Origin: Octopus sinensis
Lineage: Eukaryota
NCBI RefSeq assembly: GCF_006345805.1
Contig: NC_043009.1
Span: forward strand, 12,338,001 to 12,402,000
DNA: 64,000 nt
Reading direction: 5' to 3'
Part shown: positions 2,351-48,720 of the stretch, one piece after another
How positions within the stretch are numbered: position 1 is the stretch's first letter
How the letters are laid out: every line of letters begins with the position of its first letter
Position numbers and translations under genes: made by a program
Notes under the pieces: generated by a model
What the model was told of the DNA's origin: nothing
Database searches by the model: none
What the model saw: only the letters and a program-made list of their open reading frames with translations

Positions 2351-2497
2351 CGAGATAATGGTTTGATCCGTTGTTCCAAATTGTTTTCATACGGCAACTT
2401 GTATTGGTTCCCAGGCATTCATATTTCCAGGAACTTTCGCTGTAAGTACTGTTTGTCATATTGAAGGATACAATATATGGCATTTTACACGAATAAC
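2351..2497 (-). CDS. Probable exon 4 (left copy): degenerate Sushi-like module
   Basis: Mirror of 48574-48720 with 4 differences (L>M, E>G, two synonymous Asn). Frame open, acceptor TTTTTTAACAG. Confidence 0.6.
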
Positions 2498-3039
2498 CTG
2501 TTAAAAAAAAATATATATATATATAAGAACTACCTGTTGTAGCACACAGTACTTTAGTATTTGTTTACTTAAATATATTATTACAGGAGCGTGAGCACAC
2601 GCATATTTCATATTAAAATCTCCTCAGTCATGCTGTTCCGAATCGGATCAAACTGCTTAAAAGGTAATCTAGCAAAGGTGCAAAGTACTTTTACTGTAGC
2701 CTCAGATAGATCAATACTATGTAATCCAGTGGTAGGGAGGTCCCGTCATATACATATACAGGGTTCACCAAAAGTTCCCCGAGAGTAAATCAAAATTCCA
2801 TAAATACTATCTCTTATTCTGTATTGACTCGAATAGAAAAATGTGTCCCTCAAGAAGGACTTCACTTTGAACAATTTTCATGATGTTTCATATTTAGGTG
2901 CTTTTATTAAATTCATTCAGTCATTAAACATAAGTAAATATTGGAATTTAAATGGTTTTGATTCAAAATGTGACCTCGTGTGTACTGTTGGCGATTTTTT
3001 TCCTCTGTCTTCCCTTCTCTGGATCTTTCCTTCTCCCAT

Positions 3040-3074
3040 GTTTCCGACGAAGAGCTCCGCTCGAAACGTTAAAC
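3040..3074 (+). ncRNA. Minimal hammerhead-like motif
   Basis: gttt-CCGACGA-A-GAGC-tcc-GCTC-GAAAC-GTT-aaac. Confidence 0.4.
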
Positions 3075-5057
3075 CCTCCTTCTTTCTTTCTTTCCTGAGC
3101 GTCCAATAATACTATATTTGTTCCACGTCCTCGCGTTGTTGTGTTTCTTTGTGTTTTCTTGTTTGGATTAACTATATATATATATATATATACATGTATA
3201 CATTTTGCTTGTTTGTTATGTAGGGAAGTAAATATGTGAGCTAGCATGATCTCTCCCTCCCCTCCCCTCTCAAACCAAGATATAAATATTAAAAAATACA
3301 TTTCTATCAACAAACATTCCCTGTCTAACCTTATGTCTCTCTCTCTCTCTCTCTCTCTCTCTCTCTCTCTCTCTCTGTGCTATCATTCCCTTTTATCTAA
3401 AGACATGTATCTTACACCTCATTAACACCTTCCTCCAGACACACACCTAAGCTCATCTTTATGGTAGAAAATTACTGAAGCTACTCTTTATAAAATTAAG
3501 ATAGTTGATTCAGCCATAGAAGAACTTGAAAATCATCTGACCATTATATTTTCTACCAAAGTCCGACTATTCAAGTGGAACCAGCAGGAGGTCACTTTCA
3601 CTTGCCTTTCATAAAGCACCTCTTAAATAACCCTGACTTCCCAACTTCATCCTCAATCAATTATCTTGCTTTTACCATTGAATATTTTCTTTCACCTCTG
3701 GTTCGTCAGCACTCCTTCACTCGCACGCTTATCATTAACAAACACCAACCCCACATCTGACATACCCACATCTATTTTTATATATATATATATATATATA
3801 TATATATATATATATATATATATATATATATATATATATAGTGAGAGAGAGAGAGAGAGAGAGAGAGAGGGAGAATTACACAGCACAACATAAACTGAAG
3901 ATGAGTCAAATAAGATACTTGTTGGGTTTATGATATGGGGAGTATTGGGACGATTGTAATCTTAAAGAAACGTCTAAAAATTAGTGGTTTTATAGTAATT
4001 GTCAAAAGTACTGGATAGGTTGAAGTAAGTTTAATTGTTTGATAATAATAATAATAATAATAATAATAATAATAATAATAATAATAATAATGATAATAAT
4101 AAAAATAATTATAATAATAATAATATATATATATATATTATACACACATACACACACACATATATTCGTATGTGTTTAGGTACATATGCATGTGTATATG
4201 TTCCAGTATGCGGGCCTATATAATAGTGCATATAGACATTTATATGAATTTATTTTTTATTCTTGAGATTCACACAGAGAGAACCTACTTACCTACCTAC
4301 CTACCTACCTACCTACCTACGTACCTACCTACCTACCTACCTACCTACCTAATTACCTACCAGTGGTTTACATGCTAGTTAAACCATAGGTGGAACAGCT
4401 GTTAGTAATCAGGATCAGATTACAATATATTACAATATAATAGGATCAAATATCGCTGGAATATATGGTACAATACCATGGTAAAAGTCACTCAAGGTAG
4501 GCAGTATTTGAGTTCAATTCATAGGACGTTTAAGAGGCCAACATAAAACCAGGTAATATCTATGATGTTGCTAGCTAGATGCCTAATACTGCTTGGAGAA
4601 GTTAATCATGTTAATGAGAGTAATACGACCAGCTGCTTTGTAATTTGAAGTGGCTTAAAAACGTGACTTCATCGGAATTTGAACTTGGTAAAAAAATACT
4701 TTAAGAAAACACCACGGCCATTTTGTTCAATCGCGTAGCAACTAAAAACAGCACCCCGGTGTTTCTCATGGGAGAATGGACTGTGAAAGTAGAAAAAAGC
4801 AGCAGACAGACTATCTGCGACATTAAGATTTTAACACGAGCAACATTAAGATGGTTTCAGGTTGTTTAGATGCGAAGAAAAAGAATAGATGCAAACAATA
4901 TTTCATTTCCTCATTAATAAAGAGGCTGGAGCCAAATGTTTCACAAATGATTTGAGAAACAAAATGGAATTAATCAGTTCGAGAATCTAAACTGTAGCAT
5001 ACACGTAATAGATGAGGTCACATGTTCTTCAGTTAAAAACTGTAAATAAAATAATAT

Positions 5058-5585
5058 ACTCTTTTACTCTCTCTTTTACTTGTTTCAGTCATGTGACTGT
5101 GGCCATGCTGGAGCACCGGTTTTAGTCGAGCAAATCGACACCAAGAATTATGCTTTGTAAGCCTAGCACTTATTCCATCGGTCCGTTTTGCTGAACCGCT
5201 AAGTTACGTGGACGTAAACACACCAGCATCGGTTGTCAAGAGATGTTGGGGCACAAACACACAAACATACACACACACACACACACCACACACACACACA
5301 CACACACACACACACACACACAACACACACACACACACACACACACCACACACACACATATATATATATATATACATATATATATATATATATATAATAT
5401 ATATATATATATATATATATATATACGACGGGCTTCTTTTCAGTTTCAGTTTCCACTCACGAGGTTTTCGTCGGCCCGAGGCTATAGTAGAAGACACTTG
5501 GCCAAGATGCCACGCAGTGGGACTGAACCAGGAACCATGTGGTTGGTAAGCAAGCTACTTACCACGCAGCCACTCCTACGCCCAT
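5058..5585 (-). mobile_element. tRNA-derived SINE with internal (TA)n/(TG)n microsatellite
   Basis: Head GTGGCTGCGTGGTAAG..GGTTCAGTCCCACTGCGTGGC; body GACAACCGATGCTGGTGTGTTTACG; tail AAGTAAAAGAG. Many copies in the window. Confidence 0.8.
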
Positions 5586-46025: not shown

Positions 46026-47993
46026 ATTATTTTATTTACAGTTTTTAACTGAAGAACATGTGACCTCATCTATTACGTGTATGCTACAGCTTAGATTCTC
46101 GAACTGATTAATTCCATTTTGTTTCTCAAATCCTTTGGGAAACATTTGGCTCCAGCCTCTTTATTAATGAGGAAATGAAATATAGTTTGCATCTATCCTT
46201 TTTCTTCACATATAAACAATCTGAAACCATCTTAATGTTGCTCGTGTTAAAATCTTAATGTCGCAGATAGTGTGTCTGCTGCTTTTTTCTATTTTCACAG
46301 TCCATTCTCCCATGAGAAACACCGGGGTGCTGTTTTTAGTTGCTACGCGATTGAACAAAATGGCCGTGGTGTTTTCTTAAAGTATTTTTGTACCAAGTTC
46401 AAATTCCGATGAAGTCACGTTTTTAAGCCACTTCAAATTACAAAGCAGCTGGTCGTATTACTCTCATTAACATGATTAACTTCTCCAAGCAGTATTAGGC
46501 ATCAAGCTAGCAACATCATAGATATTACCTGGTTTTATGTTGGCCTCTTAAATGTCCTATGAATTGAACTCAATTACTGCCTACCTTGAGTGACTTTTAT
46601 CATGGTATTGTACCATATATTCCAGCGATATTTGATCCTATTATATTGTAATATATTGTAATCTGATCCTGATTAGTAACAGCTGTTCCACGTAAGGTTT
46701 AACTAACATGTAAACCACTGGTAGGTAATTAGGTAGGTATGTAGGTAGGTAGGTTCTCTTTGTGTGAATCTCAAGAATAAAAAATAAATTCATATAAATG
46801 TCTATATGCACTATTATATAGGCCCGCATACTGGAACATATACACATGCATATGTACCTAAACACATACGAATATATGTGTGTGTGTATGTGTGTATAAT
46901 ATATATATATTATTATTATTATAATTATTTTTATTATTATCATTATTATTATTATTATTATTATTATTATTATTATTATTATTATATTATTATTGTTATT
47001 ATTATTATCAAACAATTAAACTTACTTCACCTATCCAGTACTTTTGACAATTACTATAAAACCACTAATTTTTAGACGTTTCTTTAAGATTACAATCGTC
47101 CAATACTCCCCATATCATAAACCCAACAAGTATCTTATTTGACTCATCTTCAGTTTATGTTGTGCTGTGTAATTCTCCCTCTCTCTCTCTCTCTCTCTCT
47201 CTCTCACTATATATATATATATATATATATATATATATATATATATATATATATATAATATATATATATATAAAAATAGATGTGGGTATGTCAGATGTGG
47301 GGTTGGTGTTTGTTAATGATAAGCGTGCGAGTGAAGGAGTGCTGATGAACCAGAGGTGAAAGAAAATGTTCATTGGTAAAAGCAAGATAATTGATTGAGG
47401 GTGAAGTTGGGAAGTCGGGGTTATTTAAGAGGTGCTTTATGAAAGGCAAGTGAAAGTTACCTCCTGCTGGTTCCACTTGAATAGTCGGACTTTGGTAGAA
47501 AATATAATGGTCAGATGATTTTCAAGTTCTTCTATGGCTGAATCAACTATCTTAATTTTATAAAGAGTAGCTTCAGTAATTTTCTACCATAAAGATGAGT
47601 TTAGGTGTGTGTCTGGAGGAAGGTGTTAATGAGGTGTAAGATACATGTCTTTAGATAAAAATGGGAATGATAGCACAGAGAGAGAGAGAGAGAGAGAAGA
47701 GAGAGAGAGAGAGAGAGAGAGAGAGAGAGAGACATAAGGTTAGACAGGGAATGTTTGTTGATAGAAATGTATTTTTTAATATTTATATCTTGGTTTGAGA
47801 GGGGAGGGGAGGGAGAGATCATGCTAGCTCACATATTTACTTCCCTACATAACAAACAAGCAAAATGTATACATGTATATATATATATATATATAGTTAA
47901 TCCAAACAAGAAAACACAAAGAAACACAACAACGCGAGGACGTGGAACAAATATAGTATTATTGGACGCTCAGGAAAGAAAGAAAGAAGGAGG

Positions 47994-48028
47994 GTTTAAC
48001 GTTTCGAGCGGAGCTCTTCGTCGGAAAC
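47994..48028 (-). ncRNA. Minimal hammerhead-like motif (mirror of 3040-3074)
   Basis: Identical reverse complement. Confidence 0.4.
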
Positions 48029-48573
48029 ATAGGAGAAGGAAAGATCCAGGGAAGGGAAAACAGAGGAAAAAAATCGCCAACAGTACACACGAGGTCACAT
48101 TTTGAATCAAAACCATTTAAATTCCAATATTTACTTATGTTTAATGACTGAATGAATTTAATAAAAGCACCTAAATATGAAACATCATGAAAATTGTTCA
48201 AAGTGAAGTCCTTCTTGAGGGACACATTTTTCTATTCGAGTCAGTACAGAATAAGAGATAGTATTTATGGAATTTTGATTTACTCTCGGGGGACTTTTAA
48301 TGAACCCTGTATATGTATATGACGGGCCCTCCCTACCACTGGATTACATAGTATTGATCTATCTGAGGCTACAGTAAAAGTACTTTGCTCCTTTGCTAGA
48401 TTACCTTTTAAGCAGTTTGATCCGATTCGGAACAGCATGACTGAGGAGATTTTAATATGAAATATGCGTGTGCTCACGCTCCTGTAATAATATATTTAAG
48501 TAAACAAATACTAAAGTACTGTGTGCTACAACCGGTAGTTCTTATATATATATATATTTTTTTTTTTAAACAG

Positions 48574-48720
48574 GTTATTCGTGTAAACTGCCATATATTG
48601 TATCCTTCAATATGACAAACAGTACTTACAGCGAAAGTTCCTGGAAATATGAATGCCTGGAAACCAACACAAGTTGCCGTATGAAAACAATTTGGAATAA
48701 CGGATCAAACCATTATCTCG
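48574..48720 (+). CDS. Probable exon 4 (right copy): degenerate Sushi-like module with 4 N-glycosylation sequons
   Basis: Strong T-tract acceptor TTTTTTTAAACAG|, phase 1-1 open frame YSCKLPYIVSFNMTNSTYSESSWKYECLETNTSCRMKTIWNNGSNHYL. Donor G|GTACGG is weaker. Frame is open in both arms. Confidence 0.6.

Follow-up and report, generated by a model that had tools for sequence, protein, structure and literature searches.

Does a 64,000-nucleotide stretch of the Octopus sinensis genome (CM016871.1:12,338,001-12,402,000, hereafter the window) hide two intact genes for secreted proteins standing head to head, or one gene and an incomplete mirror image of it? The question arose from a first-pass annotation of the bare sequence, which described a divergent pair of four-exon genes, here called copy A and copy B, each encoding a signal peptide, a PAN/apple domain, an EGF-like module, and two Sushi (complement control protein, CCP) domains. 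Our analysis shows that copy B is a single eight-exon gene, RefSeq LOC115218571, which is N-terminally truncated in the annotation. We consider that the locus as a whole is best explained, with a probability of roughly 0.8, by copy B as an eight-exon gene for a secreted protein and copy A as part of an inverted segmental duplication that is real and partly gene-converted. Part of the gene has been annotated before, the kinds of domain that it encodes are well known, and nothing about it is mechanistically unexpected; the practical yield is a corrected gene model together with a flagged, possibly artefactual inverted duplicate.

The window has a G+C content of 37% and a single 100-N gap. It was compared with an overlapping sequence (L001, GCA_006345805.1 CM016871.1:12,371,638-12,413,170), which was reached via the RefSeq protein of LOC115218571 (P0002, 260 amino acids) and of which 30,363 bp are 100% identical to window positions 33638-64000. 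The comparison also included P0001 (O. bimaculoides LOC106871881, 377 amino acids), a pair of paralogues from O. bimaculoides (P0003) and O. sinensis (P0004, LOC118765760), and an O. vulgaris locus (L003, OX597826.1) that served as the comparison sequence for exons 2-7 and for the inverted-repeat arms. The coordinates of all features are collected in Table 1.

The first four exons (303, 88, 159, and 147 nt) are built as the first-pass annotation had described them, and this holds for both copies: exons 2-4 are preceded by AG, all four are followed by GT, the phases are 0, 1, and 1, and a single open frame starts from divergent ATGs at 18106 (copy A) and 31441 (copy B), 13.3 kb apart. Because the spliced peptide matches annotated Octopus proteins at E=1e-83 and is colinear with them over every junction, the four-exon arrangement lies far outside what chance would produce. 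However, these exons do not make up the whole gene. Exon 4 of copy B ends in a phase-1 donor (TCG/GTACGG, with the slash at the splice point), and past this point all four Octopus relatives run on with the residues DISCTT…. Exons 5-7 were placed by tblastn of the homologues combined with inspection of splice sites, and exon 8, which was not found within the window, was located beyond it in L001. The GT-AG sites and phases are correct in all seven of the in-window exons of copy B, and in-frame joining of the eight exons gives a protein of 429 amino acids. The paralogue LOC118765760 has a matching eight-exon layout.

In exons 2-5, 7, and 8, the RefSeq protein P0002 is 100% identical to copy B. 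Its model starts at an internal methionine (43638, exon 2) and skips exon 6, so that it has neither the signal peptide nor the PAN domain. The gene was therefore hidden only in part: exons 1 and 6 are indeed missing from the annotation, but copy B itself was already in RefSeq. With its 159 nt, exon 6 forms a phase 1-1 cassette that is intact in both copy B and O. vulgaris. For the annotation, this means that LOC115218571 should gain a first exon for the signal peptide and PAN domain, located 11.8 kb upstream, as well as the cassette exon 6, and the corrected model changes an apparently cytosolic product of 260 amino acids into a predicted secreted glycoprotein of 429 amino acids.

The annotated proteins of other Octopus species also differ in their exon content. 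P0001, which is isoform X2, lacks 36 residues of the Sushi domain (…VITW/IAYSC…; alignment columns 161-196), pointing to an alternative donor within exon 3, and the annotated O. vulgaris protein (P0005, 126 amino acids) joins exon 3 directly to exons 7-8. The P0001 donor and the skipping of exon 6 in O. sinensis suggest either cassette-type alternative splicing of phase 1-1 exons or errors of automatic models.

The predicted joining of exon 1 to exon 2 spans the 11.8-kb first intron of copy B and is supported by three features. The exon 1/2 boundary lies at an identical position in the three full-length homologues (P0001, P0003, and P0004); the motif W-(N/P)-P-x-(I/L)-A-G-x-C, which is conserved in more than 60 mollusc relatives, crosses the junction; and the length of the intron, which measures only 2.1 kb in the paralogue LOC118765760, can be attributed to the reverse-transcriptase fragments within it. 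Decayed pieces of non-long-terminal-repeat retrotransposons (RVT_1, zf-RVT) occur at 79-609, 11616-13391, 15202-15651 (mirrored at 35439-39470), and 50300-50938, and they occupy intron 1 of both copies as well as the left end of the window.

Could the four exons nevertheless make up two complete genes, each for a protein with a signal peptide, PAN, EGF-like, and two Sushi domains? Both copies have exons 1-4 intact and their start codons diverge, and reading through into intron 4 would yield 246 amino acids from copy B and 240 from copy A, with a short hydrophobic tail. We considered this read-through of exon 4 (GTALILISYSLKSE followed by a stop) as a glycosylphosphatidylinositol (GPI) or hydrophobic tail of copy B and rejected it, given that the homologues splice onward. 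Indeed, the full-length homologues and the RefSeq model all run from the exon 4 donor into exons 5-8, so that the colinearity of P0002 contradicts a four-exon gene in copy B; copy A is untraceable past the gap, and the Sushi signal of exon 4 does not rise above that of controls (see below). We regard a pair of complete four-exon genes as very improbable.

From its N terminus onward, the copy B protein comprises a signal peptide, a PAN/apple domain, a four-cysteine EGF-like hairpin, and one Sushi/CCP domain, after which come ~170 amino acids of cysteine-rich sequence specific to octopus and an acidic tail. The protein contains 25 cysteines, an odd number, and ten N-x-S/T sequons, which include the six originally noted (NIT, NHS, NMT, NST, NTS, and NGS); the cysteines are all invariant in the four-way Octopus alignment. 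Its only hydrophobic 19-mer lies within amino acids 1-23 and is accompanied by a cleavage-type site, VYS/KDD (V at -3, S at -1). The signal peptide-like N-terminal stretch and the absence of any transmembrane segment support the proposal that the protein is secreted.

The PAN domain proposed at first was recovered by its Pfam profile, with PF00024 (PAN_1) scoring 34.1 bits against a gathering cut-off of 21.4 (E=2.4e-8, amino acids 42-84). P0001 and P0004 also pass this cut-off, and P0003 falls slightly short of it. The core of the domain (C28, C53-x3-C57-x5-C63-x11-C75), within which the C-x3-C-x5-C motif had been recognized from the sequence, is invariant in the four Octopus proteins, and a sixth PAN cysteine is not evident unless it is C107. 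That residue opens the next module (C107, C112, C118, and C127), which stands ahead of the Sushi domain and whose motif, W-P-x3-A-G-x-C-x4-C-x5-C-x8-C, spans the exon 1/2 junction. When a profile built from 51 such modules was compared with the PDB, the best matches were to the four-cysteine modules of cysteine-rich eggshell membrane protein (CREMP, E=7.6e-5) and FCGBP (E=0.012), and the EGF-like modules of Notch, SPARC, and DLK1 gave weaker matches (E 0.14-0.7).

The two Sushi domains claimed by the first-pass annotation fared differently. Exon 3 has the expected four cysteines, with a tryptophan before the last of them, and an hhalign comparison with 17 mollusc Sushi domains that are Pfam-positive returned 96.3% (E=1.5e-9). 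In addition, a three-sequence profile of exon 3 matched significantly (E<0.001) only the CCP domains of complement C2 in the PDB (E=1.6e-4), with the weaker matches also all being CCPs (factor B, factor XIII B, and CR2; E 0.01-1), and a hidden Markov model (HMM) of exon 3 scored 18 bits on relatives versus 3 bits on reversed controls. On the basis of these profile comparisons, we identify the exon 3 domain as Sushi. Exon 4, which was to be the second Sushi domain, carries no such signal: hhalign gave a CCP probability of 1.5%, the PDB comparison returned no match at E<=1, and its top score of 6.5 bits was no better than that of reversed controls (5.9 bits). Its spacing, C…YxC…C…W…C, with the fourth cysteine coming from exon 5, resembles a shortened CCP, although this is a resemblance only.

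For exons 5-7, no relatives were detectable beyond the genus Octopus. Exon 6 closes with C-x-P-x4-NG-T-I-S-F, a sequence similar to the beginning of a CCP that hints at decayed CCP repeats, and the ~170-amino acid region may possibly consist of degenerate CCPs. The tail that follows (residues 357-429) has an isoelectric point of 4.05 and is built of nine-residue repeats, SDTEE(E/V)(S/T)QR; it is not conserved among the homologues.

A search of 5.8 billion protein clusters returned only four proteins (P0001-P0004), all of them from Octopus; full-length relatives were thus confined to this genus, which supports a lineage-restricted family. The best O. bimaculoides match, P0001, shows 61% BLASTP identity over 97% of the query (66% in a global alignment) and is the putative O. 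bimaculoides orthologue of copy B; its colinearity with copy B extends over all eight exons, among them the one for the signal peptide and PAN domain, and it keeps every cysteine. The paralogue LOC118765760 (405 amino acids, 46% identical) lies ~48 kb downstream of copy B in a tail-to-tail orientation, and because it also has eight matching exons, the family forms a local cluster. Two paralogue lineages of the family are present in Octopus. Against O. vulgaris, exons 2-7 of copy B differ at 17 of 767 nt (12 nonsynonymous and 5 synonymous differences), none of which removes a cysteine; the corresponding ratio of nonsynonymous to synonymous substitution rates (dN/dS) is ~0.7, a rough estimate from few sites. 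From this 12:5 ratio and the 61% identity to O. bimaculoides, we conclude that the family evolves fast.

When 1.84 billion representatives were searched exhaustively with a profile, 105 proteins were recovered at E<=1e-3. Those from outside Octopus align mainly over the head of the protein (profile positions ~8-190; E 4e-19 to 1e-3), and all 18 for which the source names an organism are from gastropods or bivalves (genera Lottia, Haliotis, Patella, Gigantopelta, Ruditapes, Mytilus, Mercenaria, and Sinanodonta). When Pfam was run on ten of these relatives, most of them showed PAN_1 and Sushi followed by GON, kringle, C-type lectin, or galectin domains; fibrinogen-related tails and CCP arrays were recognized from the sequences and source names. 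The common head is masked by source names such as SVEP1-like, CR1-like, aggrecan, plasminogen-like, and uncharacterized (P0006-P0106). In the literature searched, we found no description of a mollusc PAN-4Cys-Sushi head, nor anything on the octopus family. Collectively, these comparisons indicate that the octopus family is a cephalopod branch of a mollusc-wide PAN-4Cys-Sushi head family with an exchangeable tail. The small Octopus-restricted branch and the mollusc-wide family together provide a reasonable candidate set for studies of extracellular or immune recognition.

The closest relative not annotated as Octopus (P0006, E=4e-19) is a 360-amino acid open reading frame without introns on a 1580-bp contig from Logan SRR27666071 (L004). 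It contains a PAN domain, the four-cysteine module, and two Sushi domains, and it is probably a transcript from a mollusc or cephalopod sample.

Copy A was found by tblastn of the spliced peptide, and its splice dinucleotides are those of copy B. Its exons 1-4 contain no stop codons, frameshifts, or splice-site losses and differ from copy B at 8 of 697 coding nt (5 nonsynonymous and 3 synonymous), with copy A carrying the variants V8, K72, G79, M189, and G213. The claim that both copies are intact thus holds for exons 1-4 of each, but the homology of copy A to copy B runs right to the N gap, so that the outer limit of copy A is hidden. Transcript and contig records returned no entry for P0001 or for the open reading frames that read through exon 1 of copies A and B. 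Equivalents of exons 5-8 were not found for copy A in the window, and positions 1-1759, on the far side of the gap, hold a reverse-transcriptase fragment with no match to these exons.

The exons of the two copies are embedded in long inverted-repeat arms that are colinear in self-comparison, with identities of 92-98.8%: the 11.4 kb that run from intron 1 to intron 3 reach 98.8%, the outer 2.5 kb reach 96%, and the sequence around and upstream of exon 1 reaches 92-97%. Substitutions are distributed in patches, with none over stretches of 2-3 kb and 1-6% divergence elsewhere. A three-way count of sites among arm A, arm B, and O. vulgaris, split into an interior part (34.2-45.2 kb) and the outer 4 kb nearest the gap, revealed a mosaic. 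The arms agree and O. vulgaris differs at 161 sites (121 interior, 40 outer), arm A alone differs at 103 (41 interior, 62 outer), and arm B alone at 51 (40 interior, 11 outer). In the interior, the two arm-specific classes are therefore symmetric, and each arm resembles the other more than it resembles O. vulgaris, whereas over the outer 4 kb it is arm B with which O. vulgaris groups (97.8% identity between B and O. vulgaris, versus 96.0% between A and B). Such a mosaic of interior and outer site patterns fits an older inverted duplication with arm-to-arm gene conversion. We lean toward a real inverted duplication, albeit with less confidence than for the reading as a whole. Copy A is most likely an inverted duplicate of at least 17 kb that covers the promoter-proximal region and exons 1-4 and whose outer end is hidden by the gap.

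Upstream of copy A only, an (ATAC)n microsatellite at 19118-21665 (2.5 kb, ~647 copies, 90% matches) accounts for most of the 3.1-kb difference in arm length near the promoters. At the inner edge of arm A, an open reading frame fragment with a GIY-YIG nuclease motif (22798-23301, minus strand) scores 22.5 bits, just under the Pfam cut-off of 22.6, and may be a remnant of a Penelope-like element at the boundary between arm and spacer.

Several observations weigh against our reading of the locus. With regard to the domains, the Pfam Sushi HMM found no match at E<=10 in the octopus proteins, so that the first Sushi domain stands by profile comparison and not by a direct match, although the mollusc relatives are Pfam-positive at the homologous position. 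Likewise, Pfam EGF has no match in the octopus proteins, and their module has four cysteines in place of the six of an EGF domain; with its conserved motif and its CREMP and FCGBP matches, it may fairly be called an "EGF-like hairpin with four cysteines", whereas "EGF domain" is not demonstrated. AlphaFold2, run on P0004 with an alignment of four sequences, gave a predicted local distance difference test (pLDDT) score of 32, which is unusable as a check of the fold. With regard to the gene model, the exon 1-exon 2 junction in O. sinensis rests on homology, the RefSeq model starting in exon 2, and any function is wholly deduced from domain content. With regard to the duplication, arm A lies at a contig end and extends precisely up to the 100-N gap, no protein of its own is annotated for copy A, and the patchy 0-3% divergence of the arms resembles heterozygosity.

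These last points are also those expected of a false duplication, in which the scaffold would carry a second haplotype or a wrongly joined contig end of the one real locus, inverted and next to the gap, and the genome would have a single gene. The overall divergence of the arms (~1.4%) is lower than their divergence from O. vulgaris (1.9-2.4%), kilobase-long stretches show no difference at all, and artefacts of this kind do occur at the locus: in O. vulgaris, exons 2-3 and the surrounding intron sequence are present as a direct duplicate (L003 2700-7963 versus 8064-11360) around a 100-N gap (7964-8063), which looks like a false duplication. However, both arms and the 6.9-kb non-palindromic spacer between them lie in one gap-free contig, a gap-free join and a unique spacer that argue against a simple fold-back, which should be palindromic up to its turning point; a fold-back due to a missed adapter was rejected as the origin of the palindrome because its 6.9-kb centre is not palindromic. 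The arms also differ by indels of 1.4 kb and 3.1 kb, and in the outer 4 kb arm A differs from arm B by 4%, compared with 2.2% between arm B and O. vulgaris, which would require deep trans-species polymorphism if the arms were alleles. We judge a false duplication to be a serious possibility, though one to which we give distinctly less than even odds, and the assembly should be examined here for an inverted duplication next to a gap.

If the duplication is real, copy A might still be a dead partial duplicate, that is, a 5' fragment without exons 5-8 that drifts as a pseudogene. Only exons 1-4 are visible, and their divergence between the copies (8/697, or 1.1%) is not clearly below that of non-exon sequence (2.2% as a whole, 0-1% in the intron blocks next to the exons), so that the comparison gives no hint of purifying selection after the duplication. 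On the other hand, none of the four exons has acquired a stop, a frameshift, or a damaged splice site, the gap conceals the outer boundary so that exons 5-8 may exist beyond it, and the substitutions are too few for a test of selection. A dead copy A seems to us unlikely, although far less so than two complete four-exon genes.

Table 1. Coordinates of the gene copies, inverted-repeat arms, and neighbouring features (window positions unless a sequence is named).
Feature	Position	Strand	Remarks
Copy B exon 1: start codon, signal peptide, PAN/apple (amino acids 1-101), phase 0 donor	31441..31743	+	Splice sites; junction position common to P0001, P0003, and P0004
Copy B exon 2: four-cysteine EGF-like hairpin (amino acids 102-130)	43593..43680	+	RefSeq coding sequence begins at internal ATG 43638
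Copy B exon 3: Sushi/CCP, phase 1-1	44384..44542	+	Profile comparison
Copy B exon 4: cysteine-rich, N-glycosylation-rich, CCP-like Cys/Trp spacing, no profile signal	48574..48720	+	Phase-1 donor, no stop
Copy B exon 5: four-cysteine module, phase 1-1, not in first-pass annotation	53809..53943	+	100% identical to P0002
Copy B exon 6: four-cysteine module, phase 1-1 cassette, not in first-pass annotation	56330..56488	+	Present in P0001, P0003, P0004, and O. vulgaris
Copy B exon 7: conserved EGVMKMVCE segment, not in first-pass annotation	59984..60062	+	tblastn and splice sites
Copy B exon 8: acidic SDTEE repeats and stop	window-equivalent 64951-65170 (L001 31314-31533)	+	~1 kb past window end
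Copy A exon 1	17804..18106	-	4 nt differences from copy B, 3 amino acid changes
Copy A exon 2	7404..7491	-	Identical to copy B
Copy A exon 3	6543..6701	-	Identical to copy B
Copy A exon 4	2351..2497	-	4 nt differences from copy B, donor intact
Inverted-repeat arm A	1860..22803	.	Begins at N-gap edge; extra 3.1 kb including (ATAC)n array
Spacer between arms, 6.9 kb, non-palindromic	22804..29714	.	GIY-YIG open reading frame fragment and simple repeats
Inverted-repeat arm B	29715..49202	.	1.4-kb insertion 32911-34354 relative to arm A
Assembly gap, 100 N	1760..1859	.	Cuts arm A
Paralogue locus (L002)	CM016871.1:12,440,928-12,487,192	reversed	LOC118765760

Beyond copy B, ~9 kb past exon 8, a called gene of 176 amino acids (L001 40595-41125, minus strand) matches DDE_Tnp_1_7, a piggyBac-type transposase.

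Given its features, the product of copy B would be secreted, disulfide-bonded, and N-glycosylated. We anticipate that its PAN-EGF-CCP head may bind an extracellular protein or glycan partner, because PAN and CCP domains are well known to mediate interactions and because lectin-type domains follow this head in other molluscs. A second activity, such as matrix or cation binding, could come from the lineage-specific cysteine-rich region and the acidic tail, and the odd number of cysteines would leave at least one of them free, with a possible intermolecular disulfide and covalent pairing. A role in immune, mucus, gland, or gamete recognition, as first suggested, is plausible on domain content.

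A bolder view would be that the inverted copy is real and young, that copy A is transcribed as a shortened paralogue, and that the head family is a mollusc-wide scaffold with interchangeable lectin-type tails. We consider this combination to be improbable, less so than two complete four-exon genes but more so than a dead copy A. Were it true, the product of copy A would be a PAN-EGF-CCP head with one cysteine-rich module, ended by intron read-through or by new downstream exons, and a gene would have been born by partial inverted duplication in a fast-evolving, Octopus-only secreted family. The PAN-4Cys-Sushi head would then be a scaffold carrying C-type lectin, galectin, fibrinogen-related, or GON tails across molluscs, comparable in its logic to the FREP, CREP, and GREP families of snails.

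Several known systems resemble parts of what we describe. The mollusc head proteins share with the octopus family the N-terminal order and the W-P-x3-A-G-x-C-x4-C-x5-C-x8-C linker; they differ in having recognizable tail modules, whereas the octopus family continues into a cysteine-rich region without a detectable homologue and an acidic repeat tail. With the Apple/PAN proteins prekallikrein, factor XI, plasminogen, and HGF, the octopus protein shares the C-x3-C-x5-C-x11-C core and a PAN_1 score above the cut-off. Unlike them, its mature N-terminal region has five cysteines (C28, C53, C57, C63, and C75) rather than six before the four-cysteine module, and it has no kringle or protease domains. 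Selectins consist of a C-type lectin domain, an EGF domain, and CCP repeats, and in general terms their layout, with an N-terminal binding domain, one EGF-like module, and then CCP, is analogous rather than homologous to that of the octopus protein, in which PAN takes the place of the C-type lectin, the EGF-like module has four cysteines instead of six, and the transmembrane segment is absent. As for the locus, gene-converting palindromes and inverted segmental duplications have inverted arms around a unique spacer, with tracts of identity alternating with diverged ones. The arms in the window are arranged likewise, their outer part being more diverged than the interior; compared with the classic palindromes of sex chromosomes, however, their identity is lower (92-98.8%), one arm is cut by a gap, and they are known from the assembly alone.

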